Of a stretch of 64,000 bases of DNA, positions 1,012 through 57,249 are shown piece by piece. The DNA comes from Chrysemys picta bellii (Eukaryota): the NCBI RefSeq assembly GCF_011386835.1, contig NC_088800.1, forward strand, positions 15,500,001-15,564,000, written 5' to 3'. The position numbers were made by a program, and so were the translations under genes. The notes under the pieces were generated by a model. It did no database searches, was not told where the DNA came from, and saw nothing but the letters and a program-made list of their open reading frames with translations. The first letter of the stretch is position 1. Each line of letters begins with the position of its first letter.

Positions 1012-3619
1012 CAATATTGCCCTTGTCGTCCTCACGGATCTGGATGTCCTTGCTGGCCGTTTCCACTTGCAGCAGGTCCTGGAACTCCTCCTTATACACC
1101 TCCAGGTAGGAGACTCTGACCGTGTAGTCAATCAGGTCATTCTCATCAATGAGTTTGAAGGTCTCCGCCATGGCACGTGGGATGATGCCCTGCTCATCCT
1201 CATTGATAGAAGCTGGCAGGGAGAGACAGACACAATCATCAGAAGCAGTGGATGCCCAGAGAGCCAACTCCAGCGTGGTGTGCAGCAGGGGGCAATCAAA
1301 GCAGAGCACATCTCATGCCGCAAGGACAGTATGCCACAGGGACCAGCCTCACACCATCCCATGTGCTCAGCAGTGAGGTCCATATTAAAGGCCCCAAGGA
1401 GCACTTCTCATAGGAGGTCCTAGGGTCCTTGTCCAAAATTCTCCTCAACCCACTATTGCATTCCTGCTGCCCTTCACCCAGAGCTAGTGCATCTTAGGGT
1501 ATGTCTTCACAGTACAGTTAACCTAACCTGGGTGTGAGTGTTCCCACAGCCAACTATGCCCATGTCCTCACTGTTTCTGCACTCGCCCTTGTGTCTGGAG
1601 GCATATCCCACAGTTCTTTGTACTGAGATGTTCTAGGATTCTTTCCCAGCCAGTTGTGCCAATTGCAGGAAAATTTGTCTGTCTTTTGGGGGGAATTGTG
1701 GGAAGGTACTGGAGGATTATCAACATTCGAGTGATTTAGCCTGAATCCTCTCTGCAAAATGGACAGGCTGCAGCCTAAGTGAAAGCAAGGTCTGGGCTCT
1801 AACCCACACCCCTAGCCATGTAAGCTGGTCCAGGTTTAACCTGGGTCCGAGATTTTTCTGTGTGGAAAGTCCTGTGGGGGTTGGGCTAAAACATGGTGAA
1901 GAACCCAGGTTAACTGTGCAGTGAAGACACATCCTTAGTGGTACTGCATGTATGGAGCTGTAAAGTGCTCTCTTAAGGAGAGAAAAGTAAATTATAATAT
2001 CCGTAGGTCGCAACCATTATGGCTGAGGCTGAAATGTGATTGCCTTTGAATCCAGCACCGCTCAGAACTTTCTCCAATAAAAAAAAAAAATGTTCTTCTG
2101 GGCTGAGAATTTCTTTAAACTAAATTAAGTTTTACATTGATTTTTTTGGGGGGGGAGGAGGGGGGAAGGATATCCTCCATCTCCCCAAACCATCTGAAGT
2201 TATAAGACTCAAACTTGGCATGAAGACTCCTAACTGCAAAAGAAGAAGTCAAGCCAAACTTGAACACATAAAAGCAATTCGGTATTTTATAGCTATCTTT
2301 CTGCACATGCGCAGTAAATATTTTAAGGAGCCTTAGGTACCAAAACAGCCAACCCTTCAGTGTAAAAGCATTTATGGAAACTGAACAGCGGAAGCTCAAG
2401 AAAAGGGGAAAAAAGGAAATTGCAACAACAAAAACCTACAATGACATTAAATGCAAAACTCCTTCTGTTAAGGCTGAGTTAGGGTCTGTTACACTTAAAC
2501 AGCTATAGCAGTACTGCTGTAGCACTTCAGCATAGACACTTGCTACAGCGGCGGGAGGGTTTCTCCCGTCGGTCTAGTTAATCCACCTCCCTGAGAGGCA
2601 GTAGCTAGATTGATGGAAGAATTCTTCCATTGACCTAACACTGTCCAGACTGTGGGTTAGGTCGGCATCGCTGAGGGGTGTGGATTTTTCACACTCCGAG
2701 AGATGTAGCTATGCTGATGTAAGTTTTTAGTGTAGAACAGCTCTGAGAAATAAAGGAAGCAAGGCTCAGGGAAGTCAAAGGTGAAGACACCCTTAGAAAA
2801 ATCACAAAACAATCTCCTTGCTTGACCTTCCCAAGATAACCAAGTGGCAACCATACTTCATGGGCTGCTCAAACACAGTTATTGATCTCAAGCCAGTGGA
2901 TGAATAGTTTTGCAAAAGTTACATCAGGTTCCTATGGGAATATTACATCAGACACAGAAAAATACTATGTACGTGCAGTGTCTAGTTTTGCAGCTAAACA
3001 TAAAAGCTTACTATCAACTGGGCACCAGAAAGAGATGTGTCCTCTCTTGGTACAGGTGCAGGACAAGCTGAGGAGCCTTCGAATTTCCTCAACGTTTTGC
3101 CTGCTTCATTTCTCAGCCTTGAGGTTGCACTATCACCAGCTTTTCATGCTATTATTACTAAACTAGCCCAAGAAGTGCCATCTGCCCTGCTCACAACCAG
3201 GCCCTGGGCAGTGGATGGAGGAGGGAACCATTGCTACACATGCATCAAGGGGGGACAAGACTAGGAAGGTGCTACTTCTCCAGATACTCACAGACACTTG
3301 CTTCCCCAATGGTGTAGGTTTTGCCCGAGCCTGTCTGGCCATAAGCAAACACAGTAACATTGAAGCCTTCAAAGAAGGCCTCGACCAGCGGCTGCACGCA
3401 GGCGCCATACACCGACTCCTGGTTTGAGGATTCAGTGAAGACAGCATCAAAGTGGAAATGGCGGTTACGCCCCAGGGTCACCTCGTTGGTCTCTGGGTCT
3501 CCATGCAGGCAGGCCTCGTGCCCGTGCAACAGCTCCTTGGGCAGCAGGGGTCGAATGCGCACAGCCACTCTGACGGGAGTCTCTTCAGCTCGAGACTGGG
3601 CCTCAGCTTTCAGACCCAT
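1012..3619 (-). CDS. KIF7: Kinesin family member 7, first two coding exons (3619-3292, 1212-1012); gene continues off the left edge
   Basis: ATG at 3619-3617 (ACCATGG). Translation [34 protein letters not shown]...[19 protein letters not shown]|[30 protein letters not shown]...[14 protein letters not shown]...EDDKGNI contains the kinesin P-loop GQTGSGKT and closely matches KIF7. GT-AG junctions are phase-consistent; exon sizes 328 and 201 nt match human KIF7 as recalled. Confidence 0.97.
1497..1934. mobile_element. PIF/Harbinger-type MITE
   Basis: About 28-bp imperfect TIRs (GGGTATGTCTTCACAGTACAGTTAACCT / AGGTTAACTGTGCAGTGAAGACACATCC) flanked by TTA on both sides (1494-1496, 1935-1937). Confidence 0.8.
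2482..2743. mobile_element. PIF/Harbinger-type MITE (degenerate)
   Basis: Termini GGGTCTGTTACACT...AGTGTAGAACAGCTC resemble the GGxxxTGTCTACACT...AGTGTAGAC termini of turtle Harbinger MITEs; TTA on the left flank. Confidence 0.65.
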
Positions 3620-4529
3620 GGTCAGCAATCGCAGCAAAGTCAGGAGAGCCCGAAGTCAGGTGCCGGCACCAGCTCTCTGCCCACATGCTGTAAGGAGAGA
3701 ATCTGGGTTAATGTAGATCCATGCCAGCAATTGCCTTTGAGCAACCATCGAGAAAGGTTCCTGATGATCTGACTGAGGGATGCAGAGTGGGGCTGGAAAA
3801 ATACCCGGATCCAGCTACCCGGTGTCGGTGCAGGGCTAGGACCTACTGTACATTTACTAGAGCTTTATCCAGTCTTGTTTCACACATGCATTAGTTTTGG
3901 AGCTCCCACACATTTCTTGGGGGGCCATTCCCCAGCCAGCTCAACCCCAGAGCCAGGACTTTATCCCCATAGTCAGTCTGCATTTCCACACTGTGAATCT
4001 CCACCAGCTCCCCATGCACAGCCTGAACGATGCCTCTCGTCCCTGGAGTTCATCCACTTCACCTTGACTCTGCCCTGATGACATGTGGGTCACTCCCTTC
4101 CCCCACTCATCTGATTAAAATGGGGATAGGCTGGGGACATGGGCACAACTGGTAATCTGTGCCTCTTGGTGCCACCTACCAAGGCCTCTGGGCACCACCA
4201 CTAACAGGGAGGGCAGCACTCTCCATAACTACCCGGGGCCCTAGCAAATCCCCACCCCCGCAGGTACACACAGACCCTTAAGTCTCCCCAAGGGCTTCGG
4301 GAGCTGGGGGGGGGGGGGGAAGTGCTGCCCCACTGAGCCAGCTGGAGACAGGAGGGGTGCCCTGAGTCCCTCCAGATGGGAGAAGAGGGTCACCACACTG
4401 ATCCCAGGGCAGTGGCGTGGGGTGATGCCAAGGGACCCTGGGGTGGTGGGTGTACCATGCTGGGCCTGTACCCCCATCGCAGGGCACTGAGCCCCCTAGG
4501 GTGCTGGGCATGACGGGAGTACCGGGCTG

Positions 4530-4830
4530 AGCCCCAGGGAAGGGGTCACCGAGCGCCCCAGGGAAGTCCCACCCCGCAGCGCTCAGCCCAGGCAGCCCCC
4601 GCACTCACCCCGCGAGCCGGCCGGACAATAACAAGCCCCAGGCCGGGCGGAGGGGCCTGGCGCACGGGGATGGCGTCAGGCGCGCGCCCCGGGATGGGGG
4701 GTCTCGAGTCCCGTCCCGCCCCGCTAGCGCCGCCCCCACTAGGGGCGTCAACTCCGCCAGCCCGGCCCGTGCTAGGGCCAGTGTCCCCGGCCGGGACATC
4801 GACATGATCCCCCCGCAGAGTCCGACTCCA
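4530..4830 (-). promoter_or_regulatory. KIF7: CpG island with probable non-coding exon 1 of KIF7 (donor GTGAGT at 4608-4603)
   Basis: CpG-dense, GC-rich block about 1 kb upstream of the ATG exon. Consensus donor on the minus strand; matching acceptor TCTCTCCTTACAG ends at 3688. Confidence 0.7.
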
Positions 4831-5395
4831 GCATCATCAGCCCCCCAACCCTGCCACCCACCCCCTGCCCTGCTACCCCCACCCCCAGGGTCATCACCCG
4901 CCAGGGGCCTGCCCCCCCCAGCCCTGCCATCCCTCGCCAGGGTCATCAGCCACCCCAACCAGTATCATCAGCTTCCCCCAGCCCTGCCACACACCCCAAC
5001 CAGTGTCATCATCCTTCCCTGCCCCAACCAGGGTTATAACCCCCACCAGCCCTGCCACCCCCCACCGCATCATCAGACATCCTCCTCCCCTCCACTCCTG
5101 CCACACCTCCCCAACCAGGGTTATCACACACACACCAGCCCTGCCACCCCCAACCAGCATCATCAGACACCCCCCATTCCTGCCACCCCTCCCCAACCAG
5201 GGGTATCATCCCCACAGTCCTGCCATCCCCCTACCAGAGTCATCAGCCCCCTATCCATGCCATCCCCTCCCCAGCTCTGCCAACCCCCACCAAGCCCTGC
5301 CACCATCCTATTCCAACCAGGGTCATCAGCTCCCCCAACCCAGCCACCCCCTTTCCCCAACCACCCCTGGTGCCAGCCAGCCAAACACTGCCTGA
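4830..5395. repeat. Degenerate C-rich minisatellite (modules CCACCCCAACCAGGGTCATCA / CCAGCCCTGCCAC)
   Basis: Many imperfect copies of two short modules; extreme C-over-G strand skew. Confidence 0.85.
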
Positions 5396-5444
5396 TTTGG
5401 TGTAGGTACTCTGGCTGTCAGGAGTGATGGGGCGGGCTCACATG

Positions 5445-6619: not shown

Positions 6620-9600
6620 ATGGTTCTCCGAATCCCTCTGCGCAGAAGTGCCAGCTTCACCCCAGACCACCAGCCCTTGATGGAGATGTCCAATCCCACC
6701 ACGCTGAAAATGGAAGCGAATGTGCTAGTTCTGGGAGCAGACAGCGTGGGGAAATCAGGTGAGAACTTTAATCACCAAAGGAAGAGCAGGGAGAACATGG
6801 AAAACTTCCTAGCTGGGAGATCCCTGGAGCTGGGGAAAGCTCCCCCAGGGGAAGGGATATGACTGGGAGCTAGATCTTAGGGACTTTTAAAATCGAACTG
6901 GACAACGCTTGGAGAATAACGCTGTAGGGAACAATCCTGCCATAGCCAAAAGACAGCTGAGATGGGACCTGTTTGGTCTATTCCATCTCAAACAGCTGTG
7001 ATTCCAAGTGGGAAAGCAGAGCGCATCCTCTGAGACAACAAGAGAGTTTCATGATGGGTATGTTCTGTAAGTGAAAATGCTTCCTAGTCGGTTGCAGTCC
7101 ATTGAAATGCTGGTTTGGGAGAGTTCCTGATCTATTCATCCTTTCTTAGCAAACTTGCTGGTTGGACAATGTGTGAAATAAAATACAGAGATTGTTCACC
7201 CACAGCTCAGTGAGAGTTTAATGGATATAGAAATGGAGAGATGGCTCCATTGCAGAGCAGGCTGTCCACACCAGGCTGCGGCTGGTGCTGAGTTGGGCTC
7301 AGGGTAGTAATCACTCCGCTAGGGTTTGCAAGGGAACAAAAAAATGTCATTTTAAATCCTTAGGTTTCCCCCCCACACCCCCCGTTCTCTTCTTTGTAGC
7401 CTTGACGGTGCGTTTCCTTACCAGGCGATTCATCGGGGAATATGGAGACATGGGTGAGTGCCATGCTGGGGGCTTGCGTGTTAACTTCCCGTTGTTCTTG
7501 TGGGGTGTGAATTGACCAATTTGGAAAAGTCCTGATTTGCGTGACTGGTTCTCTGTGTGGGATTTGGCTGTTTCCTGAGCCCCCCCCCCCTTTTCCTCTC
7601 CAGGGCTCTTGCCTGCTACCTGCAGGCTTAAGGGTTAAATCTACTCATTGGAACCAGTTTGTGCATTTAGAAGCGTTTCTTGTAGAGATGTGAGGGGCTC
7701 CTGTGTGACCCGTGTGGGGCGGCTAGTGGGGATACAGGTGCAAGTGCACTGACTGAAGGACAGGAGGGAGATCGACACCCCGGCAGGCTTGGTTACCGGA
7801 TGGCAGACTCTGGCTGAATGCCAACATGCTAGGTGTGGCTCGTGCCTTACATACAGCACAAAGGCCGTGGTCCTAGCGCCCTGGAGGCTGATGTCCCACC
7901 TGGAGGGGAGGCTGTGTGTGCAGCAGGGAGGCAGTGGGTGGCAGGGTTGTCATCGAGAGGACACGGCTCTCTGGTTGTCTGTGATCGATACATGCAGTGA
8001 TCTTTGTGCCTTTTGGCAGAATTCATCTACAGCCACAGCCTGGCAATGGAGGGCAGAGAGATCCACGTCCACATATGGGACGTCCCCTGTTCACAGGTGA
8101 GGGGCCTCTGCTGCTGCTGTCTCACATTCTTGCCCCAAGGGAAAACTATTCCCCTAGCTAAGAAAACCCAAAGACAAACCATGGACTTGAAGCATCAGCC
8201 AGACTGTAACCCCTGCTTCCGACTCTCCCCAACCATGACTAACCTTTGGGCCAACCAGCTGGCTAGTGGGCAACTTGCAGGGATGGGGCCTCTCTCATGC
8301 TTCCAGCTGGAGGGTAAAGACCTTGGGACAGCAAAGACTGTATTCCCAGGCTAGCACCCGTGCAGGACTTGCCACCCTGCTCCACTAGTCCCCAGTGGGA
8401 AAGAAAGGGGATGAAGCAGCAGCTAGCTCAGTACTGGACCTGACTGAATGCCCCCCCACCCCACCCCCGTACTGGTTCAGTGGACGTGGCAGGGAGTTCC
8501 AAGTGAGGTCCTAAGCTGAGAACGCCAAACTCGTATAACCTGCAGCTAAAAGCCCTCTTTGCTCCATGCGATGCGAGGTGAGGATAGTAAGCCTGACTCT
8601 AGTCTCTTCCAAAGGGTTCTGGCCTAGCCTTGGTGGGCTCCGCCAGGTATCGCTCCTCCCCTTCCCTTTACTCGGAGGTTGTTGCTCTTCTCATTTCCCC
8701 CCCACCTTCCCTGTTCTCTTCTGCCCACTCGAGTGTTCCTCCCTGGGGAGGATGGGACTGCCTGTCCAAAGACGGGGTGTGCTGCATCTCTGCCAGCATG
8801 GAGTCAGAAGCCTCCAGCTGCTCTCTAGCCTGGCTGCTTTGCACAGAAGGGCAGGAAGTTGCTGCTAGGTGCAAGCACAGCCTCCTTGAACCAAACTGGT
8901 GAAAGGGCCCCTCCCCACCCCTCCTGGGAGTTGGAGGTGGCTGGGTTTGGATGTAGGTTAGGCGATAAAATCTTTACCTTTGGGTTATGGGTGCCAGTCT
9001 AGTTTGTGGCCCTGTGCTGGCCAAGACCAGAACCAGTCTCTCTCCTCTTGCAGCTGGTGTTTCCAGATCGGGGTTGATGTGACTGGCAGGGTTACTACCC
9101 AGCTGCAGTTGACCTGTATGTTGTTTAAAGGGGAGCATAGGAGCTTCAGTTTCCAGCCCAGCCAGATGATTGTGTGACCTTTGTCAGCACTAACATCCTC
9201 CCCAGAGACTCCCTCATTTATCAAACTCCACCCCATCTTCCTGTCCCATCTCGCCTTCCCTAGGACCGGGTGGATGAGAGCTCTGCCAAGGAAAAGCGAG
9301 TCCAGTGGGCAGATGGCTTCATCCTGGTCTACAGCATCTGCGACCGTGCCAGCTTCAACGTGCTGCGCCCCAAAGTCCAGGTCATCAAGGCAGCCAAGGA
9401 GGCTCTAAGCCAGGAGAAGGTGCCCATCGTCATCGTGGGCAACAAGCGGGACCTGCACCACCGGCGGGTGGTCTCCAGTGAGGAGGGCCGGCTCCTGGCG
9501 CTCTCCATGGACTGCGAGTTCTATGAGGTCTCTGCAGCTGAGGCCTATCATGGGGCACTCATGGTCTTCCAGGGGCTGGCGGAGCGCATCTGCGAGGCCA

Positions 9601-9689
9601 AGCTGGCACTGAAGAAGGGCACTGGGATCCGCAGCATTGTCAAAAGCATGTCGGCTGTGTTTGCTCGGAAGAGGACGGACTCACTCTGA
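6620..9689 (+). CDS. RERG-like (RERGL-family) Ras-superfamily small GTPase, 231 aa; exons 6620-6758, 7400-7453, 8020-8096, 9264-9689
   Basis: ATG in strong Kozak context (ACAAATGG). Three GT-AG introns, phases 1, 1, 0; total 696 nt. Protein: MVLRIPLRRSASFTPDHQPLMEMSNPTTLKMEANVLVLGADSVGKSALTVRFLTRRFIGEYGDMEFIYSHSLAMEGREIHVHIWDVPCSQDRVDESSAKEKRVQWADGFILVYSICDRASF...VIVGNKRDL...FYEVSAAE...SAVFARKRTDSL. Has G1 GxxxxGKS, G4 NKRD and G5 SAA. ALTVRFLT.RFIGEY and WADGF are RERG/RASL11/RASL12-family signatures; D.PCSQ is closest to RERGL. No CAAX box. Confidence 0.93.
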
Positions 9690-10374
9690 ACTGGAACCTG
9701 TGTGTTACTTCCCCATGTGCTTCCAGCTGGAAACACCAGAGTGCCCAGCCTCCTTCACTAGACTAACCCCTCCTATCCCAGTGACTGTGAAAAGAGCTGT
9801 GTAGTCTATCTGGGGAGTCAAATGGGTTCCCCCAATCTCACACCTGAGAGCCTCAGGAAAATGGCTGAATCTGCCCCTGCTAACATATATACCAGTGCAA
9901 CCTGGGGCCTTTATAATTCAACACGTAGGAGTCCATACTGTCCAACCCCACGGGGTTGGGCCCTATTATACAGTTACTAGCATGGTGTCCAATCTAGCTA
10001 TAAATGCGCCACCCCTTCCCTTGAGGAGAGGGTTCCTCAGCCAGGTAGTCTGAATTTTATGTATATTACAATATCATCTAGACACTCCAGTCAGCATTGG
10101 GGCCCCATTGTGCTGAGCTCACAGTCGCTCTTAGTTTTCACTCTGCTAAAGAAGTCCCCTCCCTTCCCTAATATTGGAAAACACCAGAGCATCTTTCTGC
10201 TGCTTCTGGGAGTATCTTACCTCCCCCAGTTCCTTTGGTGGGGAGCTGTCACTTCCTCTCAGTAAAGATGAGTGGGAAGGACCAGCTGTCCCCTAGCCCT
10301 CCGTTCCAATCTCAGCTGGGAATCTAGGAGCAATAACCTGGGCATGTGGCTGTTTGTGTCTGTCTTAGGTACTT

Positions 10375-10575
10375 ATGGTCTCTATCACCATAATATCTGA
10401 GCACCTCACAAGACTGCTGTGATGTGGGGCAGTGCTGTTAATCCTATTTTTACAGAGGGGGAACTGAGGCACAGACACATTAAGTGACTTGTCCAAGGTC
10501 ACACACAGTCTGGTAGATAAGGGAATTGACCCCTGGTTTCCAGAGTCCCAAGCTATTGCCCTGACCCGTAGACCC
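10375..10575 (-). mobile_element. MIR-like CORE-SINE
   Basis: CORE motif TTTTACAGAGGGGGAACTGAGGCACAGA...AAGTGACTTGTCCAAGGTCACACA. Confidence 0.75.
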
Positions 10576-11212
10576 TCCTTCCTTCCCCTTCACAGGGAGG
10601 TGGTACTGGGTAATGCTCCTTGTAAGCCTCTCTGATACTGATGTGCTTCTGGCGTGGCTAGTGGGTGCAGTCTCCATGTACAGAGGATGGCATCTATATC
10701 TGCCCCTTGGTGTTTCTCAGCATCTCAGATGTCTGTATCTTCAGCTGACACCAAAGCCCCTGGGATTCAGGGAACGTTGTCAGCCTCTGGTTCTGTTCCT
10801 CTTCTCTGTGCAATCTCGACCAGTTACTGAGCTGGCGTTGTCTGTGCCGAGCAGCTTCTCCCCCCGGTTCTTTTGCTGACAGCAGAGGTTTCTGTTGCTT
10901 AAACAATGCATTGTCCATGCATATAAGATTGGAGACTTGGCTGGTTTCCAGGACTCCAGACTCTAGCGTGGGATCCAGTGTATGGTAACCCGGTCCCTGC
11001 TGGGAGCCACAGTTTGTCTGCCCCTAGATGGTCACCGGGCAGGGCCTGTGAGTTGAAGGAAGGGCTAGGTTCTCCCCACAGATGGGCTGAAAACCAGTAA
11101 AATTCCTCTGAATGTGGAGCGGGGTCTCTGCTCCTTCTACCACAGCCCCTCCCCAGCACCAGGTTGAGTGTAAATAACAGGGTGCATCTGTGTAAACAGT
11201 GATTTCTACTGC

Positions 11213-11218
11213 AATAAA
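11213..11218 (+). promoter_or_regulatory. Candidate polyadenylation signal of the RERGL-like gene
   Basis: First AATAAA I found on the + strand after the stop at 9689. Confidence 0.4.
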
Positions 11219-12891
11219 CCCCCTTTGTATAGGAAGCTCCTGGCTCATCACGTCTGTGGTTTCTGTGCAGGGGAAGGGAGAACTCACCTCTGGAGGAGGT
11301 GGCTGAGGAGAACTGCCTTTTGGCCTAGCCGGCCCTAGAGTGTGACAGACCAAGGGCAGAAATCTGGGCACTGCTGCAATTTGGCTAAATCTCCCTCTTG
11401 CTGTAGTCCCAGGCCCTTCACTATTAATCCAGCACACAGTCAGCTCAAAGTGTCTGGGTGAACATGGGCCTTTTGCTGGCAGCCCAGCTCATGCAGCCGG
11501 TTTGATAGCTGGACAAACTGTTCTTTTCTCCCTTGGCTTTTGTACGCGGCTCCTGGTTTGGATCAGAGTGCTACGGAGCAGCATGTATATGATGAGCTGT
11601 GTGTGATTATTATTGGATTGGCATTGCAACGCGAGGGGCTCAGCCCCTTAGGACCGTGCCCCCCAACCTTGTGCTGCTGCGTGGCACTAACGTGTCAGAT
11701 TTGAACTAGTTTTGGGTTTCAAATCAAACCTGTGAGAGCGCTGACAGAAGGCAGAGCCTGGCTCGGGCTAGTTGTTGCAGCGCTGGAGGATGAGTTGGAC
11801 TGTCCCTCTGTCCACACTTACAGAGTGGGGCCCATTGCCTGGATTTGCAGAATCCCCAAATGTCTTGGTCCTTCAGCTCTCTGGGTCTGGCACTGGGAGC
11901 CAGGGCTCGGGAAAGCCCAGCTGTAGGAGCGGTTGCTGCCTGAGCTTTTCCCCATACAGAGTAGTGAAGAAACACTACAGCAGCTGTGCTGCATGACTGT
12001 GGAGTGCACGCTAGGGCAGACAAGGCAGGAATCTCGTGTCCCTGCTCTACAGCAGCTCAGCAGAGAGCTCCAGGGGGAGCATGTTTGCCTGCCTATGGCT
12101 GGAAGGTGGCCACAGCAGCTCCCAGCAGCGAGGACAGGACAGGACAGCTACGTCTGGCACTGCCCTCTTGTTCCAGGTCTGAGTAGGTTAGTCACATCAA
12201 TCGGGGCAGCCCCAAGCCTCCTGAAAATAGTCACCCCTTCATAAAGACAGAGAGCTGGAGGGGAGGAGCATCTCCAGCTAGGCCCGTTCCCTCCCATCCC
12301 CTAGTGAGTGGGCTGGGGATAAGGTTGAGGGTGTGGGCGAGGGGCATCCCATCTGATAAATGAAAGGGCCCAGCCTCCAGCCAATTGGCGGTTCAGACCC
12401 TTCTCTCCCCTCACTGACACCCTGGCGCAAACTCCCCTTTGCCTAAGGCCAGGAAGTGTAGGGCACTAGCCAGCCTGACACAAGGCACTGACAGGTTGGG
12501 GGGAGCTGGCATGGACTAGTCACGATACTGCAGAACACGCAGCCCTTCCCCAGCTGCTGGAGAGAGCAGCTAGCCCCAAAGGCCCAGATGCTGCCTCCCC
12601 TGCCAGGACCATGCACAGCACCACCCCGCCCTGTTTACAGGCTCATGGAGAAGCCAGCTCAGCAGCAGCTCTGCCCCAGCTCATGTCATGCTCTTTGGGC
12701 TGCAGCAGCCCCCAACCCCGTCTGTGGCTGTGCTGTTGGGATCAGGTCTTTGGACCTGTGCCGCCCCCACTCAGGGATGCAGGGACCAAGACAGCTGCAG
12801 TTCGATCCATTTTACTGGGGACGGCCTCAGTGGCACAATCTCACTCGCCCGGAGGAAACGAGCATACCAGGCACTAGACAAGTGGGGAACA

Positions 12892-12897
12892 TTTATT
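12892..12897 (-). promoter_or_regulatory. PLIN1: Candidate polyadenylation signal of PLIN1
   Basis: TTTATT on + (AATAAA on -), about 1.6 kb downstream of the PLIN1 stop codon. Confidence 0.4.
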
Positions 12898-14482
12898 ATT
12901 GCAGTAAATAGAAGAGCCGGTTGCTCTGATTGGGGGATGGGGAAACACACAGCTGGGAGGGGGATGCAGCTCACCTTCCTGCAGGGAACCTACCCAGATA
13001 CTGAGCTGCTCCTACAGGACAGGAAGAAAGGGGCTCCAAGAGCTTCCCAATGCCATAGACTGCATAGCACATGCCTTGTTACTGACTCCACAAAGCCCTA
13101 CCACCAACCACATGGAGGGCCAAGGAGATGGCCTGGCTTCTGGGGAGCTCCCATCCATGGATCCTGCCCCTGGGTCTCAAGTGACTTCTGCAGAGGAAGA
13201 CTAGGCCAGAGGAAGGATTGGCCTGCGTGGGGTAGGGGTGGGAAGGAATGAGGATGGGAAGCCACGTTCCCCCCTCAGACATTTATAAAGCTGCTGTCTG
13301 ATGGCCCTGGAAGGAGAGGGGCTGGTCTGCAGCAGAACTCAGCTCCCCCAGCCTACAGTGCAAAGACAAGTGTCCACCTCAGCTGCTGCCCACACAGGGT
13401 ACATGCCCGATAAGCCCTATTGAGCAAGGCCCAGCCATAAGCAACATGGCCTTCCAGCTCCTGCCCTTTCCTGCTCTCCTTTCCCACTCTTCTCTGCTCC
13501 CTCTTCCCCCTCCTCCTCTCTGCTCCCTCTCCCATCTCTGCTCCATCACATTAGAGCCTGCTTCTTCCTTCATGTTCCTGCTTCCTGTCCTCACATTCCC
13601 ATTCAGGAAATGCTCTCTTACTGTGTCGCTGCCATTCAACCCATCACAGGCAAGAGAGGACCAGAAATTGCCCCCTGCCCCACACTAGGGCTTGCTTATT
13701 CCATCTACCTCACAAGGCAGTTTGGGGGAAAAAAGCAACCCAGAATGACACATATTGCAAGCCATGTAACTACAAGGACCAGTGAACCTGGTGGAGAAAA
13801 GCCATCTTTGCTAAGGATTCAGCACTTTGTCCCTTCAACTGAGGGCTGAGAAGACGCCCAGGATAATACAAAAACCCCAGTGGCTCCCCCGGTAAAACCA
13901 GCACAGACCAGCCCTGACATTCCTGATACGGCTGCTGTAAAATACCAGCAGAATTAGGGATTGAGGGCCCTCTCTGACCTCTCTTCAGAAAGAAGCCAAC
14001 AGGGCACAACCCCATTTCTTTCTCTGTGGGGTCACTTTGGAGGGATGGACATGACACAAACTGCAACCCTGCCCTCGCTTTCCCCCCCATGGCCATAGTA
14101 ATACTGCACTGCAGGCCTCCCCACTAAGCAGGGCCTCAAGTCAGTCTCGGTCTCCGTGCCAGCTCCCCTCTGGGCAGACACACAGAAACAGGCCTGAACG
14201 CCCCCGACCTGCTGGGAAAGGGAATGAGCTGGGACCATCAAACTCATTTCACTCCTGGCCTCAAGCTGCACTTGACCCTGGTGCCAGAGGTGAAGGTAAG
14301 TCCCCGTCCCTGTCCCCTTGTCTGTGCTGGGGCTGTGCAGAAGGAGCACTGCTTTGAGATTAACTCCTCAGGGTCCTAATACTGAAACCAACAGCATGAT
14401 GCTCGACAAGGTGCTAAGCGCAGCAGGTGCAGGCTGGCATGTGTGAAGCAGGGAGAGAGTGAGCTCCGGCCCCTGCCCCCAC

Positions 14483-17400
14483 TCAGTCCTTCTTGAAGGC
14501 CGTGGTGTAGAGGTTGCTATAGTTAGCCCTGGTGTACACAGGCTCCGGGCTGTAGCGGTATGAATTTTTGCTTACCCTCCTGGTGCTGAGCCCCTCCCTG
14601 TAGGGGGAGAAGGCGGATTTGCGGGACAGGGGGTAGTCGGGCTCGAAGGTTGGACTCCGCTGTGGAGTCTGGCGCTGGATGGAGATGGGCTGCAGGAAGA
14701 AGGGATCCTCCAGCCCCAGGAAGGAGAGGGGATGGTGAGCTCGGTTGGCGCGCCAGTCTCCTCGCAACTGGGATTTCTCCGGGGACGGGGGAGCCACAGG
14801 CCTGGAGCCCTCCCGACTTCGTTGTGGCTCAGGAGGGGGCTCGCTCTCATGCGCCGGCTCCTCTTTCTTTGCCAGCAGCCTGGGGAGCTGAACAGCGAGA
14901 GAACACGTTAACACCCCTCCTGCCTATGGGTGGCCTGAAGCACCGCCCTGCCTCTTGGCCAATGGCTGCCAGAGGGACATCTGAGTACTGAGGAAACTGC
15001 ACTTAGCTCCTGTCTGCTCTGCACCGTAACTAAAGGAGCCCCCGACACTTATCAGAAGAGTTGCCGTTTGCCCCCACGTCTGGACAGAATCCACTGCCGC
15101 ACTGTCCCCACCCCAGAGGTGGCTGCATTTCAATGGTGCAGCATGTGCAGGAAGATGCTATGGAAATAAACAGAGGAAGGGCATGACTGGCCCTCCATCC
15201 TCTGCCTTCCTTCCCCACTGTTCATTCCCAGAGAGGGGGAGGAAACCCACCCCACAGCCCTGCTCTGTGAGGCCCAGCCTCCCTGTCCCCTCGGTGGGTG
15301 CAGAGTGTGAGGGGGCTGCATGAGCCTCAGGCCAAAGAGGCCTCCATCTGGACCATGCTGCCCAGAGGGAATTAATCCCTTTAGCTAAATCCCCACGCGC
15401 TGGGCAGGGATGAGGAGGCTTCACTGCAGCTCTTACACACCGAGTTCAACCCAACCTGGCAGGAATAAAAAGGCTAGGAGGGGGCTGGGGAGCTGGCGCA
15501 GTGGCCTTGGGGGGTAAGGAATGCCAAGACTGCAAAGCATGGCCCCCGCAGACGCCCTCCCTGGCCTTCAGCATCCTCCCTGCTTCCCCTGCAGGAGACG
15601 GGGCAGCAGGACCAGCCGCACCAAACTCATTCTCTGCTCAGTGGGGGGGACCCTGTGGGGTTAGCTCCCCCTCCTCATCCCACACATTCCTGCTTCAGAT
15701 TGGAGCCAAGCAGCCTCCCCTCCCCACAAGTGACTGCTCCCAGCCTAGGAGGTCACTCTGCTCGTCCTGGGACAGCATACCAAAGGGAGAGCGGCGCACT
15801 GGCCGAAGGGCCCACGGTGGCCCTCAGGACCAACTCAGGTCTGGAGATACTGCAGTGCTGCTGGGCCCAGACCTGCCGCCAGGTTCTGCTCAGGCTCCAA
15901 GGGACCTGCAGCTAACCCACCCCTCCCCCTCGGGCTCCAGGGGACTCTTCCCTCCTCAGGCCCGAGGCTCCAGGGGACCAGCCCTGCTCCCCTCCAGCCC
16001 TGCTCAGTAGCCAGGGGACAGGCTGCTGCAGCAGCTGGGAGATGCTAGAGGAGCACAGCTAGCTTCTCTAAATGGTTGATTCTGACTTGTCTCTCCAGCC
16101 AGGTGGGCACCGGAGCCCAGGTTCAGGCCCCTTAGCTCGGGTTGTCTCTCCCTGTCCAGATGAAGGATGTATTAGGTCTGGTTGGTCTGGTCTCGGCTGC
16201 TTCTGGGATTTTCACTGCAAGGCTTTTCCAAAGGCCCCCTGGCCTCAGGGGTGGAGACCCAAGGGGGCTGAGTGTTCCCCACCTCGCTCATGTGCTCAAA
16301 GACAGAGGGCCAAGGCTGCTTGGGGATGGGGAAGTGCACAAGTAAAGCCTCCGGAAGACAGGACCAGGTTGGCCCCTAGACCCAACCCTACTCCATCCCC
16401 AGCCAGGATCTGCCCTGTAACGTGCAGGGAGGATGGCTGCTGCCTGGACTCCCAAGTGGAGTCTGGCCCAGGCACCAGACACAGCAGGGTGACTGGTTCA
16501 ATGCTGGGGCTGGTCCCCTTTGCCATGTTGGCTTCTCCGCCCCAAGCCAGGCTGCCGAGCTGTACGGAAGGGTATGAGGAGTTGGGTCTGTGACCGGTCC
16601 CAGGACAGCAAGTGCTGCAGCCATGGGAGCAGGGACCCAGAGCCAGGTACCTCAATGTGACAGGAAGAGTCAGGGTGAGACGCCCTGGAGAGCAGTGCTT
16701 GGGGGGGTGACATCAAGGCACTGAGGCTTTTCCTGACTGCTGAGCCAGCCCAAGGGGTCTGTCGACAAGGAGGCAGTTCTGGCTGGATTCCCAGCAGCTA
16801 CTGGGACTGACGTAAGGAGGTGTCTGTGCTCTCGCTGGGCTGGTGTTTGCAAGAACCCACCTCCCCACACCACCACTCTGCAGAGGTGGCCCCTCCCTGC
16901 CAGGCACCTGCTCCCTTCACTCTGCAGAAAGAGCGCCAGGAGGAGACTGCAGAGCATCCCCTGCCACCAGGCGAGGGCACCTCCCCTGATCCTCCTCCCT
17001 CCCACCCAGTGGCATTTTGAGTCGTAAGTATAGTGCACACTGGAGAAAGATGGGACCTCAGGCTCCCACTGGAAAGCAACCCATTCTGGGGGACCCCTGC
17101 ATGCAGGGGACCGCCTTGTCCATGGACTATTACTGACACAGTCACAAACACTGACCAGGTAAGTAGGTGCCAGACACCAGCCCGCCCAGTGGGGCTCTGC
17201 ACCGGGAGCTGCTCAGAGGGCCTTGGGTCGTTATTCCCCAGCACACTGATCTGACAATACTGCCTGCTCCTCAATGGGTCCCTCTCCCTGCCCCTCCCAA
17301 TCTCTCTCTTCTACCCTTCACAAAGCCCTGTATCCTCGAGGCTACTCAGACCTTACACCCACCACGGAGCTGGGGCTCCCGGCCACTCCTGCCCCACAAA

Positions 17401-20400
17401 GCAGAAAAGCCTGCAGCTGAGAACTCGACTCCAGACAGGTCCCCAGGGGGTGGGCAGTGGAGCCCAGTGGGTTCAGGGGGCAGTCTGCGTCTCCATGGAC
17501 ACATGACTAATGGGCTGAGAGCCCTGGGTCAGGCGGGGGGGAGGGGCAGGAGGGGAGGAGGGAGGAAGGAATCAGCTGGAGGGGAGGTGGGTCACTCCCT
17601 GAACTTTCACCTTGCCAGGAATTTCTGGTCACAGACCCAGACTCTCTCAGCTGGGATTTCTTAGGACAGTCCATGTGAGCAGCACTCCGGGGGCCTGGCT
17701 GCAGTCGTCTGGGAAGGACAGACCCCACATGCAGTACGTGGCTTTTGGGCCAGCCAATCTGAGAGGCCCACATTAGCTAATGGGTGTGCCTGAGCACGTG
17801 GCTGTGCCCCTCACAGCTGACTGGCAGTAGCCCCTGCTTTGGGGCTCCAGACAACGCTCTCCAGTGACCATCAATCATGACTTTGGCTTCACAGGTGGAA
17901 GGGGGCAAAGGACTGGACTAGCAGGGGGGCTTCACGTCAGGACTGAAGGGCACTGGCACAGCTGGGTGTGAGGTGGCCAAGACTGGGGTGCATCAGCAGG
18001 GCACCCCTCTGCACCATGGCCCGTGTAAGCAAAGCCAAGAGTCCATCACTTCCCCAAGCCCAGGGAGGGCCCCTGCTCCATTCTGAGCTGAAGGAGCCAT
18101 CTCTCACATGGCCCAAAGGAGCCCCAGACTGGCAGCGAGTCTGCTGCTGTAGGAACCCTTGGTAGGATTCCCAGCAGGGAGGGGCTCCAGCCAGAGGTGG
18201 GGGAAGATACAGACCCCAGGCCAGAAGGGGCTGATCCTGGCCAAGAATGTCCTGCCCTCACACATCCCCCTCTCTCCTGCAGTGCAAGAGGGGAGCTCTC
18301 AGCGGAAGGGACAAACTCACCGGCACGTAGTGAGAAAGGGTCTCCACCATGCTCCCAGTGACGCTGCGTAGGGCATCCCCCAGAGTGCCCACCTTCTCTC
18401 TGGCTATGGAAGCTGCCTTGCGGGGGGTGAGTTGGAGCAGCTCCCCAGCTGTCCCCCAAGCAGCAGAGGGGACCCTCTTCACATTGGAGATGGTGGAGAG
18501 ATAGGCAGTTTGTAGGCTCTGGGCCATGCTGCCCAGGAGGCTTGGAGTCTTGGCACCCTCAGCCATCTGCAAAGAGAAACACGCCCAGACGCTCTGGTAA
18601 GTGCCAGGCACAGCCCATGCTGGGGAACAGCAGGCCCCAGGCACCATCTCTGTCCTGCAGCCCTGTCCTTCCCTTTGAGTGCCCCAGCCCCCAGCAGCCC
18701 AAAGACTGAACAGATGATTCGGAGCCAGTGCCATTGGCCTTGGGCTGAGCAGCTTGCACTGGGGCTTTATCCTGTCCTCTCTCGCCCAAGCCCCCAGGCC
18801 TCCAGAGACAAGACAAGCCTGCTCTCCCCTCCGTCTCCCCCATCCCCAGCTATTTGATTCCAGGCTGTGTTTCCGGTGGATGTTTGTCCAACTCCCCTAG
18901 TTGTACTGAGAGTGGGGAGGGCAAAGGTGCAGGGCTCTCACTTCCCTTCTTCCTTGTCCCAGCAGACCTCCTACTAGGGGAAAGCTTCCACTCAGCCATT
19001 TCCACAGCTTGAACTCCGTGCCAGGTTCTTGCCCCTGGTCTGGCAGCACAAAGCAGCTGTGAAGCTGGTGGATCTAGCCTCCCAAGGATTCCCCTGCAGA
19101 GGTGAACCCATCCCTAGGTGTCAGCGCTTCACCAGTAGTGGGTCTATGCCATCCCCTCTGTGCCCAGTGCAAGGCCCTGTGCCCTCTAGGGCAAAGAGGG
19201 GTGTAGCAGGGCATCCCTACTCACCAGCCAGCCCTGGCTGCCTAAACTGCCCCCTAGGACTGTGGGCCGAAAACTGGACGTTTGAGCAGCTTCCCCTGCT
19301 CCCCACCCCTCACTGCAACAAACAGAGCTCAGCCAGGCCAGAGACTCCAGGCCTCTGCATCTGACAGGCCTGGAGGCTGCCAACTCCCTTTTCAAGGGTA
19401 GTGGCTGAGGACAGGGGCCTCTCCAGAGCCTCCACCAAGTGAGGGAGGCTAAAGACCCTCACTTCCTGCCCCTCTGCCAGGGCTTCCAAACCCTCAGCTT
19501 GCAACAGCCATCTCCACCTGGGAGGGCACAAGCAGAGGGGACCCTTGAGAGCTGCCCAAGGTCACCAAGCCTGTTTCTTGGGAATAAAGACCAAGTGGCA
19601 GAGGGGCACGGGGAGCATGGCCCATGGGATCACAGTGGCTACTAAATAGAACTGTTTCCCTTTATGTGGCAGTGTTATCTAGCAGTTATTGCAGGGGGCT
19701 GGGAGCCAGGACTCATGGGTTCTGTACCCAGCTCTGCTACCAATTCCCTCTACAGCAGGGGTCAGCAACCTTTGGCACACGGCTTGCCAGGGTAAGTACC
19801 CTGGCGGGCCGGGCCGGTTTGTTTATCTGCCGCGTCCGCAGGTTCAGCCGATCGCAGCTCTCTCTGGCCGCGGTTCGCTGCTCCAGGCCAATGGGAGCTG
19901 CTGGAAGCGGCGCGGGCCAAGGGACGTACTGGCCGTCCTTCCCGCAGCTCCCATTGACCTGGAGCATCGAACCGCAGCCAGTGGGAGCTGCGATTGGCCG
20001 AACCTGCGGAGGCGGCAGATAAACAAACCGGCCCGGCCCAGCAGGGTGCTTATCCTGGCAAGACGTGTGCCAAAGGTTGCCGACCCCTGTTCTACAGCCT
20101 TGGGAGAATCACACACCCTTCCCTCCCCCACCTCCCTGAGCCTCAGCTTTCCCTCTGTACCTGATCCCTGACTGTACTAAGGGCCACAACTGCTGCCTTG
20201 GCCCCTGGACAGGGCCTGCAGGGGGCTTTGTAAAGATTCCCTCGCGGACCCCTCAGAGCAGGTGTGCCCCTCTCTGTACCTCACTTGCTTTGGTTTCTTC
20301 TTTCTTCAGCTCCTCCTTCTCTTGCTCCTGTTCTGACTCCTTACTTTGCTCCTTGCTCAGCCAACCAGCTGCTGCATTCTGCACATCATGCAAGACCTGC

Positions 20401-23400
20401 TGGGCCTTGGCCGTGCTCTGCCTGGCCACGGCACCCTGCAGCGAGAGAGAGCAGAGAGCCCGTGCTCACAGCTGGGATCTCGCCAGGGCCACCATGGAGC
20501 GGGGCAGCTGCTGCATTTCATGACTGCATCCCTTGTGCTTGAAACTGGCTCCCGAATCCAGGTGTTCTTGCAGCCCACCCTGGCAATGCATGATGGCCAG
20601 CACAAGGCTGATGAGTCAGAGTTCACTGCCCCTCGCCAGGGCTCCAGATTTCCACAGAAAAGCACTCAGCTAGCCTGCAGGCCAGCATCAAGGGAGGGGG
20701 AGCTGCACTAACACACAGCATAACACAGGACCTTTCCATGCGAGGGCCTAACTGTGCTTCATGCTGGGCAAGCCACCTCCGAGCCACGCCTGTTCCCACC
20801 TGCGCATGGGGGACAGCGCTGATGGAGCTGCGAGGCTAGGCCCGGTGCTGCTTTGCAGGCTCAGGTACTACAGTGAGGAGATGAACGCTAAGGGGAAAGC
20901 CTAGCAATAAATACGTTAAAATGCCAACATTTCCTCTGTCAGCCTCCTGCGATAGAGCTGAGGGACTCACAGGGAACACTCACCCACCACTAACATGCTG
21001 CCTTGTCTGGGTGCAAAGCAGCAGCTGTTTGACTGATCCATAACAAAGCTGCACACCAGTTTAGGACAGAAAGTAAAGAGAATTCCAGAGCCATTAAAAA
21101 CCACAGGAGGGATTTGTCGAGTCGAGATGCAATTACCCTGGATGGAATTTGGCCAGAACATAGGGGTCAAAACCCTAACTCTTTCCAAAAGTGACTTAAG
21201 ATCTTTAATAACCACAAGTGGCCCAGTCCTTGGAGTTAGGTACCATCCGATTCTCTCCCCTAACACCGCTCCCTGCAGCACAGCACCCCTCGTGTCATGC
21301 TGGGGCACTGTGGTCAACGAGTCACTCAGACCCCATCCCTTGCAGCAGCTCCATGTTCCTTGGAGGTCTCCCAGCCAACCCAGGCCAGCCTTGCTTAGCT
21401 TGTGAGCTCTAATCGGAATGAGTGGCTCGCAGGATCCATTCTGGGTCAGGGCTCTAATTGTGACGGGATGTCCAAGGGTCAGAGGACATAGAGACACACA
21501 TGGGAAGAAATCCCAAAAAGGCAGGGGGCTGTGGGGTTCTGGCGGGGGTGGTTTCCAACCCCAGGGGAGCAGAGTGGTGAGACGGTGGGTTGGAGGGGGC
21601 TTTTTACTCCTGATTTTATCTGTGCTTCCGCTGGGGCCTTTTGCTTTGGGAAGGATGTTATGTCAAGACCATTAATTAACATTCTAAATTTAGAGCCAGT
21701 TAAAAATAATCCATCCTGCTAGCTTGGTGGGGGCCTTGTGTGCACTGATGCCACAGAGATTATAAGGGGCCAGGACCCTGCCTGCTTTGGAGGGAGAGTG
21801 AGCAGCTAGCAGCAAAGAATGAGCCAAAGAGCCACTTGGCTCTTCCCATGGAGCAAGCAAAGAGAAATATATTCACCGCCGCAATGCCCAGCATCCTGTT
21901 CTCCACCAACCATGAGACCCTGAAAAGTTCTGGCCTGGCTCCTAGACAGGGCAGTAGTGGATGGGCCTCAGCAGTTAGAATAGGATGTTGGGTGGCAGGA
22001 CACCTGGGTTCTGCTCCTGACATGAACTTGCTGTGACCTTGGTGACTTGGGCAACTGTGTCTCAGTTTCTCCTCAGTGAAATGAGGATAAAACCCCGTCC
22101 TACCCTGCTGAGAGGCTTAACTGATTAGGGGGTGTAAAGCACTCAGAGCGCCTTAGAGACAGAAATAGACAGATGCAAAGATGAGAAGGGCTTTTAGTAT
22201 AATTTAGTATTACTTATGTTTATTTCCCTGTCTCTGTGCCAGCATCCTTCAGTATAGTTCAGGAGATGGGGATTGTGCAGTAACGGCTGCTAAACCAGCA
22301 GGGGGCCCCAAAGCACTGTTTTTGTCTAGGTCCTCCATTAAACATTGGTTGTCGTTTGTGTGGCTTGGGATCCAGCAGCGAGCCGGACTTTTTATAGATC
22401 CAAGGGGCTATGTTTTACGCCCATGTTTTACGGCAGATCAGTCCCGGCACTAAGCTGCTGCCAGGTTCCCCAGGAGTCACTGCATCAGGTTCCCCTTAGC
22501 TATGCAGTGCAGGGCGGGGGCACTCACCAAGCCTGGAATCCATGTGGTCAGCTCCTGCCCTCTGGCTCTAGTGCGCTGGATGGTTCTGGCTGTCTGCTGG
22601 TAGGCGCGGTGGGAGATGGTGCTGGCCAAAGCACCGATCCTGGTGAAGGTGCCAGGATCTGGCTGGGAGGGCGTCACTTCAGATCCATGCATCCTTGTGG
22701 GCTTATGACCTACGGGCAGAGAGGCAGAGCCAACTGGGAATGGGCATGAAACCAGTATGGGAAGAGGTGGGAACATCACACATGGCCTGGGATTCACCTG
22801 ACCAGCTCTGCACCCTCGGTCCATGGGAGACTTGGCATGGAACTGCTCTCCTGGGATCTCTGGGGGCAGAATTCTAGTGGTGCACAGGAGCAGGTCTTTG
22901 CGTCGGAACTGCCCCGCTACACCAGCTGTACCGCAAAGCCCCATACAGCTCTGTACAGTGCCTGGCACCCTAGGACTTTCATTTCTGAAGCCCCTTTTTC
23001 AGTCCTCCAGGCCTCCCCCTCAGCCCCAACCACCCAGCCAAGTGCAGTACCTTGCTGAGGAATAATCAGCCCCCCCCCACCTTTTCTCTTCTTTCAGGCT
23101 CCATCTGCAGGAGGCATCTGACTAGGGTGACAGCGCCACCTTGTGGAAAGCTCAGCAGCTGGCACCCTGAGAACTGGTTGGTTGCAGGAGGCAGATCGTA
23201 CCTGCGTTGGAAGGGCCCATCATGTGGGCCCCCTCGCACAGGTAGAATCACTGGGCCATTTACTGTGTCCGAGGACATAACAAGGAAGAAGGAACAATAA
23301 CCTGGGTATTCACGGGGCCACCCCTCCCTCCCTATTGCTACTCAGGACACCACCAGGGGATCTCCCGAGCAGGCTAGGTGAGAGAGAGGAGACTCTACCC

Positions 23401-38826: not shown

Positions 38827-57249
<18,423 letters not shown>

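Follow-up and report, generated by a model that had tools for sequence, protein, structure and literature searches.

The stretch of DNA analyzed here, hereinafter the window, comprises 64 kb of the genome of the turtle Chrysemys picta bellii (GCF_011386835.1, NC_088800.1:15,500,001-15,564,000; chromosome label C10); positions given without a chromosome label refer to this window. Between the genes for a KIF7-type kinesin and a PLIN1-type perilipin, the plus strand contains, at 6620-9689, a gene for a Ras-like GTPase that belongs to one of three clades of RERGL-type proteins, namely clade A, which includes the canonical RERGL, clade B, which includes the gene in the window, and clade C. Taken together, the evidence makes it highly probable that the clade B gene, which so far has no name, is functional and conserved and belongs to the RERG/RERGL branch of the Ras family, with the three-gene history that is proposed below.

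Splicing of the open segments yields four coding exons on the plus strand (139+54+77+426 = 696 nucleotides (nt) of coding sequence) and a product of 231 amino acids (aa); all three introns have GT-AG borders, and the stop codon TGA is located at 9687-9689. The features of the gene are as follows:

6620-6758, plus strand: coding exon 1, with the start ATG, an N-terminal extension of about 30 aa that begins MVLRIPLRRSASF, and the P-loop GADSVGKS; ends in phase 1
7400-7453, plus strand: coding exon 2, 54 nt; helix alpha1 and the switch I region RFLTRRFIGEYGDM, in which the Thr35 equivalent is missing
8020-8096, plus strand: coding exon 3, 77 nt; beta2-beta3 and a degenerate G3 motif, WDVPCSQ, that replaces DTAGQ
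9264-9689, plus strand: coding exon 4, 426 nt with the stop; NKRD, SAA, helix alpha5 and a near-invariant tail that ends IVKSMSAVFARKRTDSL
9690-11240, plus strand: putative 3' untranslated region (UTR) with a presumed end point; the first plus-strand AATAAA past the stop is at 11213-11218
7364-7399, plus strand: possible in-frame extension of exon 2 through an alternative acceptor (AG at 7362-7363) 36 nt 5' of that exon, with a 12-aa insertion, GFPPTPPVLFFV

The product matches the Pfam Ras family (PF00071) with an E-value of 1.1e-27 (97 bits, against a cut-off of 21.6), and the nearest solved structures by sequence are those of RERG (2atv, 1.5e-29) and then RASL12 (3c5c). Exon lengths of the form x/54/77/426-429 reproduce the exact annotated proteins in Caretta, Athene, Sminthopsis, Tachyglossus, Chanos and Heptranchias, and this agreement in six other species places the gene model far beyond chance. 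The original prediction, which was made from the letters of the window, of a complete four-exon, 231-aa open reading frame with clean splice sites is thus borne out by the intact spliced coding sequence, the GT-AG introns and the Ras match. The same prediction described the start context as a strong Kozak sequence, a claim that fails because position -3 is C; the context ctacaaATGG, with G at +4, is an adequate one. A predicted Chrysemys isoform X1 (243 aa) carries GFPPTPPVLFFV between the P-loop and alpha1, and the matching letters are present in the window. We rejected this isoform as the productive form because use of the upstream acceptor separates the P-loop from alpha1; it appears to be either a prediction artefact or a non-productive isoform, and the alternative acceptor is probably non-functional.

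A six-frame search of the 2.37-Gb Chrysemys genome with the clade B protein as the query recovered the gene itself on C10 (coding exon 4 with an E-value of 5e-85), its closest paralog on C20 (56% identity in the last exon), and weaker matches on C1, C4 and elsewhere. The other two RERGL-type genes of the turtle are:

C1:116.44-116.45 Mb: clade A gene (canonical RERGL), built from the genome; five coding exons, 204 aa, tail RRKSV
C20:19.764-19.767 Mb, minus strand: clade C gene; four exons, 221 aa, with middle exons of 54 and 77 nt and phases as in clade B

A RERG-type last exon at C1:114.63 Mb, with a translation that closely resembles the human RERG chain in 2atv, is 1.8 Mb away from the clade A gene. 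Most of intron 1 of the clade C gene is filled by an imperfect tandem repeat of about 1.3 kb that is rich in CCCTTCCCTCC (L015:1650-2930, minus strand). The clade B protein is 35-41% identical to clade A proteins and 54-60% identical to clade C proteins. Protein searches with A, B and C queries produced three non-overlapping sets of best matches that share one NCBI name.

Sequence motifs and predicted biochemistry

The nucleotide-binding motifs of the clade B protein are intact, namely GADSVGKS (residues 39-46), NKRD (150-153) and SAA (180-182); G39, G44, K45, N150, D153 and S180 are invariant in 58 sequences, and D85 is likewise listed as invariant. Switch I reads EYGDMEFIY, with a one-residue deletion and without the Thr (EYGD[MIL]E across the orthologs). 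In the G3 motif, WDVPCSQ, Cys takes the place of the Gly, where other species have Tyr, Asn or Ser and echidna alone has Gly, and the catalytic Gln is shifted by one residue. Clades A and C have the same defects in switch I and G3. The clade B protein has no CAAX box. In the AlphaFold model, the G domain is confident (residues 30-200, with a predicted local distance difference test of about 80-97), the N-terminus (1-25) is disordered, and the long terminal helix is of falling confidence. The top Foldseek matches of this model are RASL12 (3c5c; E-value 7.5e-17, template modeling (TM) score 0.89-0.90) and RERG (2atv; TM score 0.92 by target), with the Ras-family chains RRAS2, Rap1 and KRAS also near the top (TM score of about 0.9 for KRAS).

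In Ras, the switch I Thr and the DxxG Gly are the gamma-phosphate sensors that drive the conformational change between the GDP-bound and GTP-bound states. Given that both sensors are lost, and with Ras biochemistry as the guide, we lean toward the interpretation that the clade B protein is a nucleotide-binding, non-cycling atypical G protein. Judging from its motifs, the protein is expected to bind Mg-guanine nucleotide, and it is probably soluble and non-lipidated.

The main alternative, in which the protein is a conventional Ras-like switch and alternates between its GDP and GTP forms with the help of a guanine nucleotide exchange factor and a GTPase-activating protein, appears substantially less likely. 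It is consistent with the intact P-loop, NKRD and SAA, with the invariance of D85, with a Gln only one residue past its usual place, and with the DVPG sequence in the echidna ortholog. The nearest characterized relative, RERG, is a working GTPase, with a solved GDP-bound structure (2atv), that has been reported to hydrolyze GTP. Nevertheless, across about 450 million years (My), the switch I Thr and the G3 Gly are both missing from almost all of the orthologs examined, and absence of the sensors over such a span looks selected for rather than accidentally tolerated.

Outside the G domain, the most conserved features of the clade B protein are the two termini. The tetrapod N-terminus, MVLR.PLRRS.S, is conserved, including in the marsupial and the monotreme, and the C-terminal tail, GI[RK].IV[KR]SMSAVF.R[KR]RTDSL, varies hardly at all between shark and marsupial. 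The very end of clade B proteins, R-[KR]-R-T-[DN]-S-[LMFI], is near-invariant, whereas clade A proteins end in RRKSV and clade C proteins in RRRTE; a penultimate Ser/Thr behind a basic cluster is common to all three clades, and clade B conforms to the pattern of the mode III 14-3-3 motif. This motif consists of a penultimate Ser/Thr preceded by basic residues, and the tail, with its final RxRxxS-L, also fits sites of basophilic kinases. Control by phosphorylation and 14-3-3 binding through the conserved termini (RRSAS and R-K-R-T-D-S-L) is therefore conceivable, and we put it forward as a tentative suggestion. A candidate amphipathic membrane helix in the tail was rejected, its hydrophobic moment of 0.38 being equalled by 20% of shuffles. 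The turtle genome contains a single-exon, full-length 14-3-3 gene at C23:10,200,337-10,200,999 (L034:1450-2187, minus strand), the 246-aa product of which resembles 14-3-3 sigma (stratifin).

Like clade B, RERGL proteins of clade A have a Ras fold with a RFLTRRFIGEY lead-in, lack the switch I Thr, the DxxG Gly and the CAAX box, and combine intact NKxD and SAA motifs with a basic tail that has a penultimate Ser. In contrast to clade B, clade A genes have five coding exons for 204 aa rather than four for 231 aa, encode no N-terminal extension, and form a fully supported separate clade; their G3 motif is one residue shorter (DPCSQ versus DVPCSQ), the tail is RRKSV versus RKRTDSL, and the locus is near RERG rather than on C10. 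Clade C, the sister of clade B in the tree, shares with it the four exons with middle exons of 54 and 77 nt in the same phases, the MV.. start and a ...MSAVFGRRR tail, and differs in the RRRTE end and in a G3 motif of the form WDS.CPQ. RERG is the best solved match by sequence and, like clade B, has no CAAX box, but is only about 35% identical to it, retains a DPT switch I and a DTAGQ G3 motif, and belongs to the other half of the tree. RASL12, the top Foldseek match, also lacks the DxxG Gly (DTAD); it is 32% identical to the clade B protein, falls outside the RERGL superclade and has a different C-terminus.

The RGK proteins (Gem, Rad, Rem) and the Rnd proteins have non-canonical switch II or catalytic residues and terminal extensions, are controlled through expression, and show phosphorylation-dependent binding of 14-3-3 at terminal serines. 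The likeness of clade B to these proteins is a functional analogy only; they are not close relatives (the matches to REM1 and RAD in PDB are in the range of 1e-19 to 1e-18).

Taxonomic distribution and selective constraint

The spread of the orthologs was read from the best 120 protein-database matches to each of the A, B and C queries. For clade B, these comprise proteins from turtles (94-95% identity), squamates, crocodilians, birds, amphibians, coelacanth, gar, bowfin, bichir, many teleosts (in one source under the zebrafish-style clone name si:dkeyp-59c12.1), sharks and rays, along with the marsupial Sminthopsis (71%) and the monotreme Tachyglossus (70%). The suggestion in the original prediction that the gene was kept in sauropsids and lost in mammals is at odds with this spread, given the orthologs in sharks, ray-finned fish, coelacanth, amphibians, a marsupial and a monotreme. 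No eutherian protein was found among the best 120 matches, which reach down to 62% identity, or among the representatives that were looked up, which come from fish, lamprey, amphioxus and other invertebrates; the Logan clusters that lack labels are all fish-like. What stands of the predicted mammalian absence is its eutherian part: eutherians are without a detectable ortholog in protein databases, but the marsupial and monotreme copies sit between the kinesin and the perilipin, so that two of the three mammalian lineages have the gene at its syntenic site. Clade B apparently was lost in eutherians.

Clade C matches come from turtles, crocodilians, squamates, tuatara, amphibians, lungfish, coelacanth, ray-finned fish (in one source under the name zgc:64022) and a shark, with none from birds or mammals among the best 120. 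Clade A is represented by many eutherians (72-77% identity to the turtle protein), sauropsids, amphibians, coelacanth, fish and a shark, with no marsupial or monotreme among the best 120 matches to canonical RERGL. The lack of marsupials among the clade A matches agrees with a preprint (10.1101/2025.08.12.669816) in which RERGL was not found in the Tasmanian devil. Protein databases together with this preprint point to a possible reciprocal loss in mammals, whereby eutherians keep A without B, and marsupials keep B without A.

Absence from protein databases is weak evidence, and the eutherian genomic interval lay outside the comparison, so an alternative to be considered is that clade B is present in eutherians as well, unannotated or mis-annotated, and that no loss occurred. 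This seems quite improbable considering that hundreds of eutherian genomes have been annotated by a pipeline that calls the gene in birds, reptiles, marsupials and monotremes, that eutherians are missing from the best 120 matches despite the abundance of eutherian clade A proteins, and that the label-free Logan clusters contain only fish-like sequences.

The ratio of nonsynonymous to synonymous substitution rates (dN/dS), an analysis that had been proposed along with the original prediction, was estimated pairwise (NG86) for clade B coding sequences and ranges from 0.10 to 0.35. The values are 0.10-0.22 in deep pairs; the highest of all pairs, 0.35 against Caretta, is based on few changes because dS is only 0.07. 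With respect to expression, small sequencing runs (29-134 million letters, type guessed to be RNA) contain the segment 9264-10100, which covers the last exon and 3' UTR, at shares of 0.68-1.00, whereas intron 3 is represented in these runs at a share of 0.31 at most, or else the run is not listed as containing the intron. In runs of about 2000 million letters, several of which were guessed to be DNA, the share for intron 3 is 0.63-1.00. This contrast between exon and intron fits a spliced transcript, as soft evidence and not as proof.

That the turtle gene is a decaying or non-functional copy is very unlikely. The dN/dS value against Caretta is indeed the highest in the comparison, and the gene is contained in no run recorded as RNA; however, the Caretta ratio derives from the few changes mentioned above, the reading frame is intact with canonical splice sites, all invariant residues of the family are kept, the protein shares 94-95% identity with its counterparts in other turtles, and the small runs contain the exon far better than the intron.

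Phylogeny, synteny and the origin of the three genes

A maximum likelihood tree was constructed for 55 sequences under the LG+C20 model, with outgroups taken from an exhaustive representative search and named by exact look-up. Clade A, which includes all eutherian RERGLs and the turtle gene on C1, is supported at 100/100, the group of B, C and a lamprey gene at 100/97, and clade C at 97/88. Clade B forms one side of a branch in 98% of the bootstrap trees, and the marsupial and monotreme proteins are placed together inside amniote B (100/98). A branch with 97/89 support separates the RERGL superclade, which consists of A, B, C and RERGL-like sequences from amphioxus and other invertebrates, from RERG-type sequences. 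In approximately unbiased (AU) tests, the union of clade B and eutherian RERGL as one clade was rejected (delta lnL 190.7, p-AU 2.3e-62); a single clade of A, B, C and the lamprey gene was not rejected (p 0.45). A single pre-vertebrate ancestor of A, B and C is possible, in which case the amphioxus RERGL-like gene would be a candidate pro-ortholog.

The notion that clade B is orthologous to mammalian RERGL and was translocated in one lineage can be discarded with near certainty. One moved gene could be suggested by the NCBI name that the clades have in common, by their shared RFLTRRFIGEY motif, basic C-terminal tail and lack of the switch Thr and Gly, and by the failure to find RERGL in the Tasmanian devil, but the turtle has a separate 204-aa RERGL with five coding exons that lies 1.8 Mb from RERG and shares 72-77% identity with eutherian RERGL, clade B is only 35-41% identical to clade A proteins, and both the 100/100 support of clade A without B and the AU test speak against it. 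The phylogeny thus excludes one of the refutations that the original prediction had named, orthology with mammalian RERGL, and supports its central claim that the gene in the window is a paralog distinct from canonical RERGL.

The neighbors of the clade B gene in the window are as follows:

3272-3637, minus strand: first coding exon of a KIF7-type kinesin (Pfam Kinesin, 5.6e-23); head-to-head with the clade B GTPase gene, 3 kb apart
4200-5400, no strand: GC-rich island (GC 0.62-0.76) between the divergent kinesin and GTPase genes
12892-26413, minus strand: PLIN1-type perilipin gene, from the minus-strand AATAAA (12892-12897) to the PAT-domain exon (26114-26413); tail-to-tail with the GTPase gene
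33913-34512, minus strand: PEX11A-type exon (Pfam PEX11, 2e-48); third member of the conserved block

The perilipin exons at 23760-24230 and 26114-26413 (minus strand) match Pfam Perilipin with E-values of 3.4e-28 and 4.4e-18, respectively; the minus-strand AATAAA at 12892 probably ends the gene, and the tail-to-tail GTPase and perilipin genes are therefore about 1.7 kb apart. The identification by Pfam of kinesin, perilipin and PEX11 exons on the expected flanks confirms the predicted position between KIF7 and PLIN1. The GC-rich island may be a promoter region common to the kinesin and GTPase genes; it includes a C-rich tandem repeat at 5017-5302 (82-bp unit, about three copies) with spurious long proline-rich open reading frames on both strands. 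Farther along the window, a very GC-rich minisatellite at 55635-56813 (units of 8-103 bp, CCCGGCCCCGCGG-like) contains overlapping open reading frames of 200-390 aa in several frames; this is probably a non-coding CpG-island repeat. A paralog of KIF7 is found at C6:90.3 Mb (56%).

The order kinesin (minus), GTPase (plus), perilipin (minus) is also found in Sminthopsis, Tachyglossus and the owl Athene; the ortholog in Caretta has the kinesin upstream, and that in Chanos has a perilipin 2.4 kb downstream. The upstream kinesins in Caretta, Athene, Sminthopsis and Tachyglossus are 1357-1381 aa in length. The shared order in tetrapods together with the Chanos perilipin indicates that the locus is at least as old as the bony vertebrates. 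No perilipin was seen within 10 kb of the shark B gene, the amphioxus RERGL-like gene, the lamprey gene or the zebrafish C-type gene.

The turtle clade C gene likewise has a perilipin as its tail-to-tail neighbor, with a PEX11 paralog beyond it. The perilipin of Chelonia, 455 aa in length, is located 8 kb downstream of the clade C gene in this orientation; in Chrysemys, a perilipin PAT exon is found near the clade C gene on C20, at 19,717,863 (plus strand), and PEX11-like exons that are 46-48% identical to PEX11 in the window lie at C20:19,703,443-19,706,105 (plus strand). When flipped, the C20 block has the order and orientation of GTPase, PLIN1 and PEX11A in the window. The clade C gene of gar adjoins genes for CKS-domain and PAPS_reduct-domain proteins, which we take to be CKS1B and FLAD1, at human 1q21.3; on this identification, the clade C region matches human 1q21 and not 15q26. 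PLIN1, PLIN2, PLIN3-5 and plin6 have been described as ohnologs from the two rounds of genome duplication (2R) in the paralogon on human chromosomes 15/9/19/1 (Granneman et al. 2017, PMC5342826).

Because the GTPase genes of clades B and C both stand at the head of a block with perilipin and PEX11 genes, alike in order and orientation, it is likely that they are ohnologs; a three-gene block duplicated along with the perilipins is what ohnology predicts. Both clades contain sharks as well as bony vertebrates. The ohnolog origin that was suggested originally is thus plausible in view of the duplicated blocks on C10 and C20, but the accompanying idea of retention specific to sauropsids is not.

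Some observations on turtle perilipins were made along the way. On C20 (19,703,443-19,767,054), a perilipin gene is located between a PEX11B-like gene and the clade C GTPase gene. The fourth 2R perilipin, plin6, was assigned to a human-chromosome-1-like paralogon and described as lost in lobe-finned vertebrates (Granneman et al. 2017, PMC5342826); the turtle C20 perilipin may be an ortholog of plin6 that was retained. Exons resembling the perilipin PAT domain occur in tandem arrays at C1:114,394,854-114,500,921 (plus strand), C1:113.78 Mb, C6:120.87-122.03 Mb, C25:8.73-9.22 Mb and C13:27.69-27.71 Mb, and may represent an unexpected expansion of the perilipin family in the turtle. The C1 array consists of at least eight copies spaced by about 15-20 kb and is separated from RERG by only about 125 kb, which makes it the third instance of perilipin genes close to a RERG-family GTPase gene.

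Implications for the RERGL family

Under the scenario proposed here, jawed vertebrates would ancestrally have had three RERGL-type genes: A near RERG, B between KIF7 and PLIN1, and C by another perilipin and a PEX11 paralog. Genes B and C would have arisen in the early vertebrate genome duplications, each at the head of a block in which the GTPase gene faces perilipin and PEX11 genes of the opposite orientation (GTPase -> <- perilipin <- PEX11). Clade B would then have been kept in cartilaginous and bony fish, amphibians, reptiles, birds, monotremes and marsupials and, presumably, lost in eutherians. The protein keeps the residues for binding of Mg-guanine nucleotide (GxxxxGKS, D85, NKRD, SAA) and lacks both of the 'loaded-spring' sensors, with the Gln displaced. 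As a soluble protein that binds nucleotide without cycling, it may have its activity set by expression level and by modification of the conserved termini, where the basic RRSAS at the N-terminus and R-K-R-T-D-S-L at the C-terminal end fit basophilic-kinase sites and the mode III 14-3-3 motif, as in RGK and Rnd proteins.

Several points weigh against parts of this scenario. The branch of clade B itself is weak in the ultrafast bootstrap (40/93), and the tree does not place clade A firmly relative to B+C and so does not establish 2R ohnology of all three genes. The eutherian loss is deduced solely from absence in protein databases (the best 120 matches and the representatives looked up), and the evidence of expression comes from runs of guessed type, with none recorded as RNA containing the gene. 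Nucleotide binding, absence of hydrolysis and phosphorylation are all read from sequence, and the DVPG of the echidna ortholog implies that the G3 Gly can be tolerated. A co-fold of residues 190-231 with the turtle single-exon 14-3-3 protein scored 0.02; the peptide was unphosphorylated, which makes this score uninformative either way.

The gene is already automatically annotated in well over a hundred species, and four RERGL-subfamily genes have been tabulated in zebrafish (Diez et al. 2011, PMC3141262). In the literature searched, no paper was found that tells the three clades apart, gives clade B a name, notes its eutherian absence or reports a function, in agreement with the original statement that no functional work was known. 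The present result is a modest evolutionary finding in a known family and not a new class of system. Its most interesting aspects are the conserved block of GTPase, perilipin and PEX11 genes, which exists as two ohnologous copies, and the mammalian losses, which appear to be complementary. A rather speculative extension, to which we assign little weight, is that this triad is an ancient functional or co-regulated module, with a shared regulatory landscape and an ancestral G protein that acted at lipid droplets or peroxisomes. If true, this would explain the survival of the three-gene order in two ohnologous copies for more than 450 My, and also the apparently complementary pattern of A and B in marsupials versus eutherians.

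A single automatic name at present covers three old vertebrate genes. An entry called 'RERGL' in data from a bird, a marsupial or a fish may stand for any one of them, and their separation prevents false orthology calls. Clades B and C, without eutherian counterparts among the proteins searched, escape mouse and human research, and the apparent losses provide a clear example of mammalian lineages that lost different ohnologs. Zebrafish, Xenopus, chicken and opossum are suitable for the study of this atypical Ras-family protein, in which the switch is degenerate and the terminal Ser motifs are conserved. The fixed place of the clade B gene by PLIN1 and PEX11A, mirrored in the second block, offers a testable link to lipid-organelle biology.

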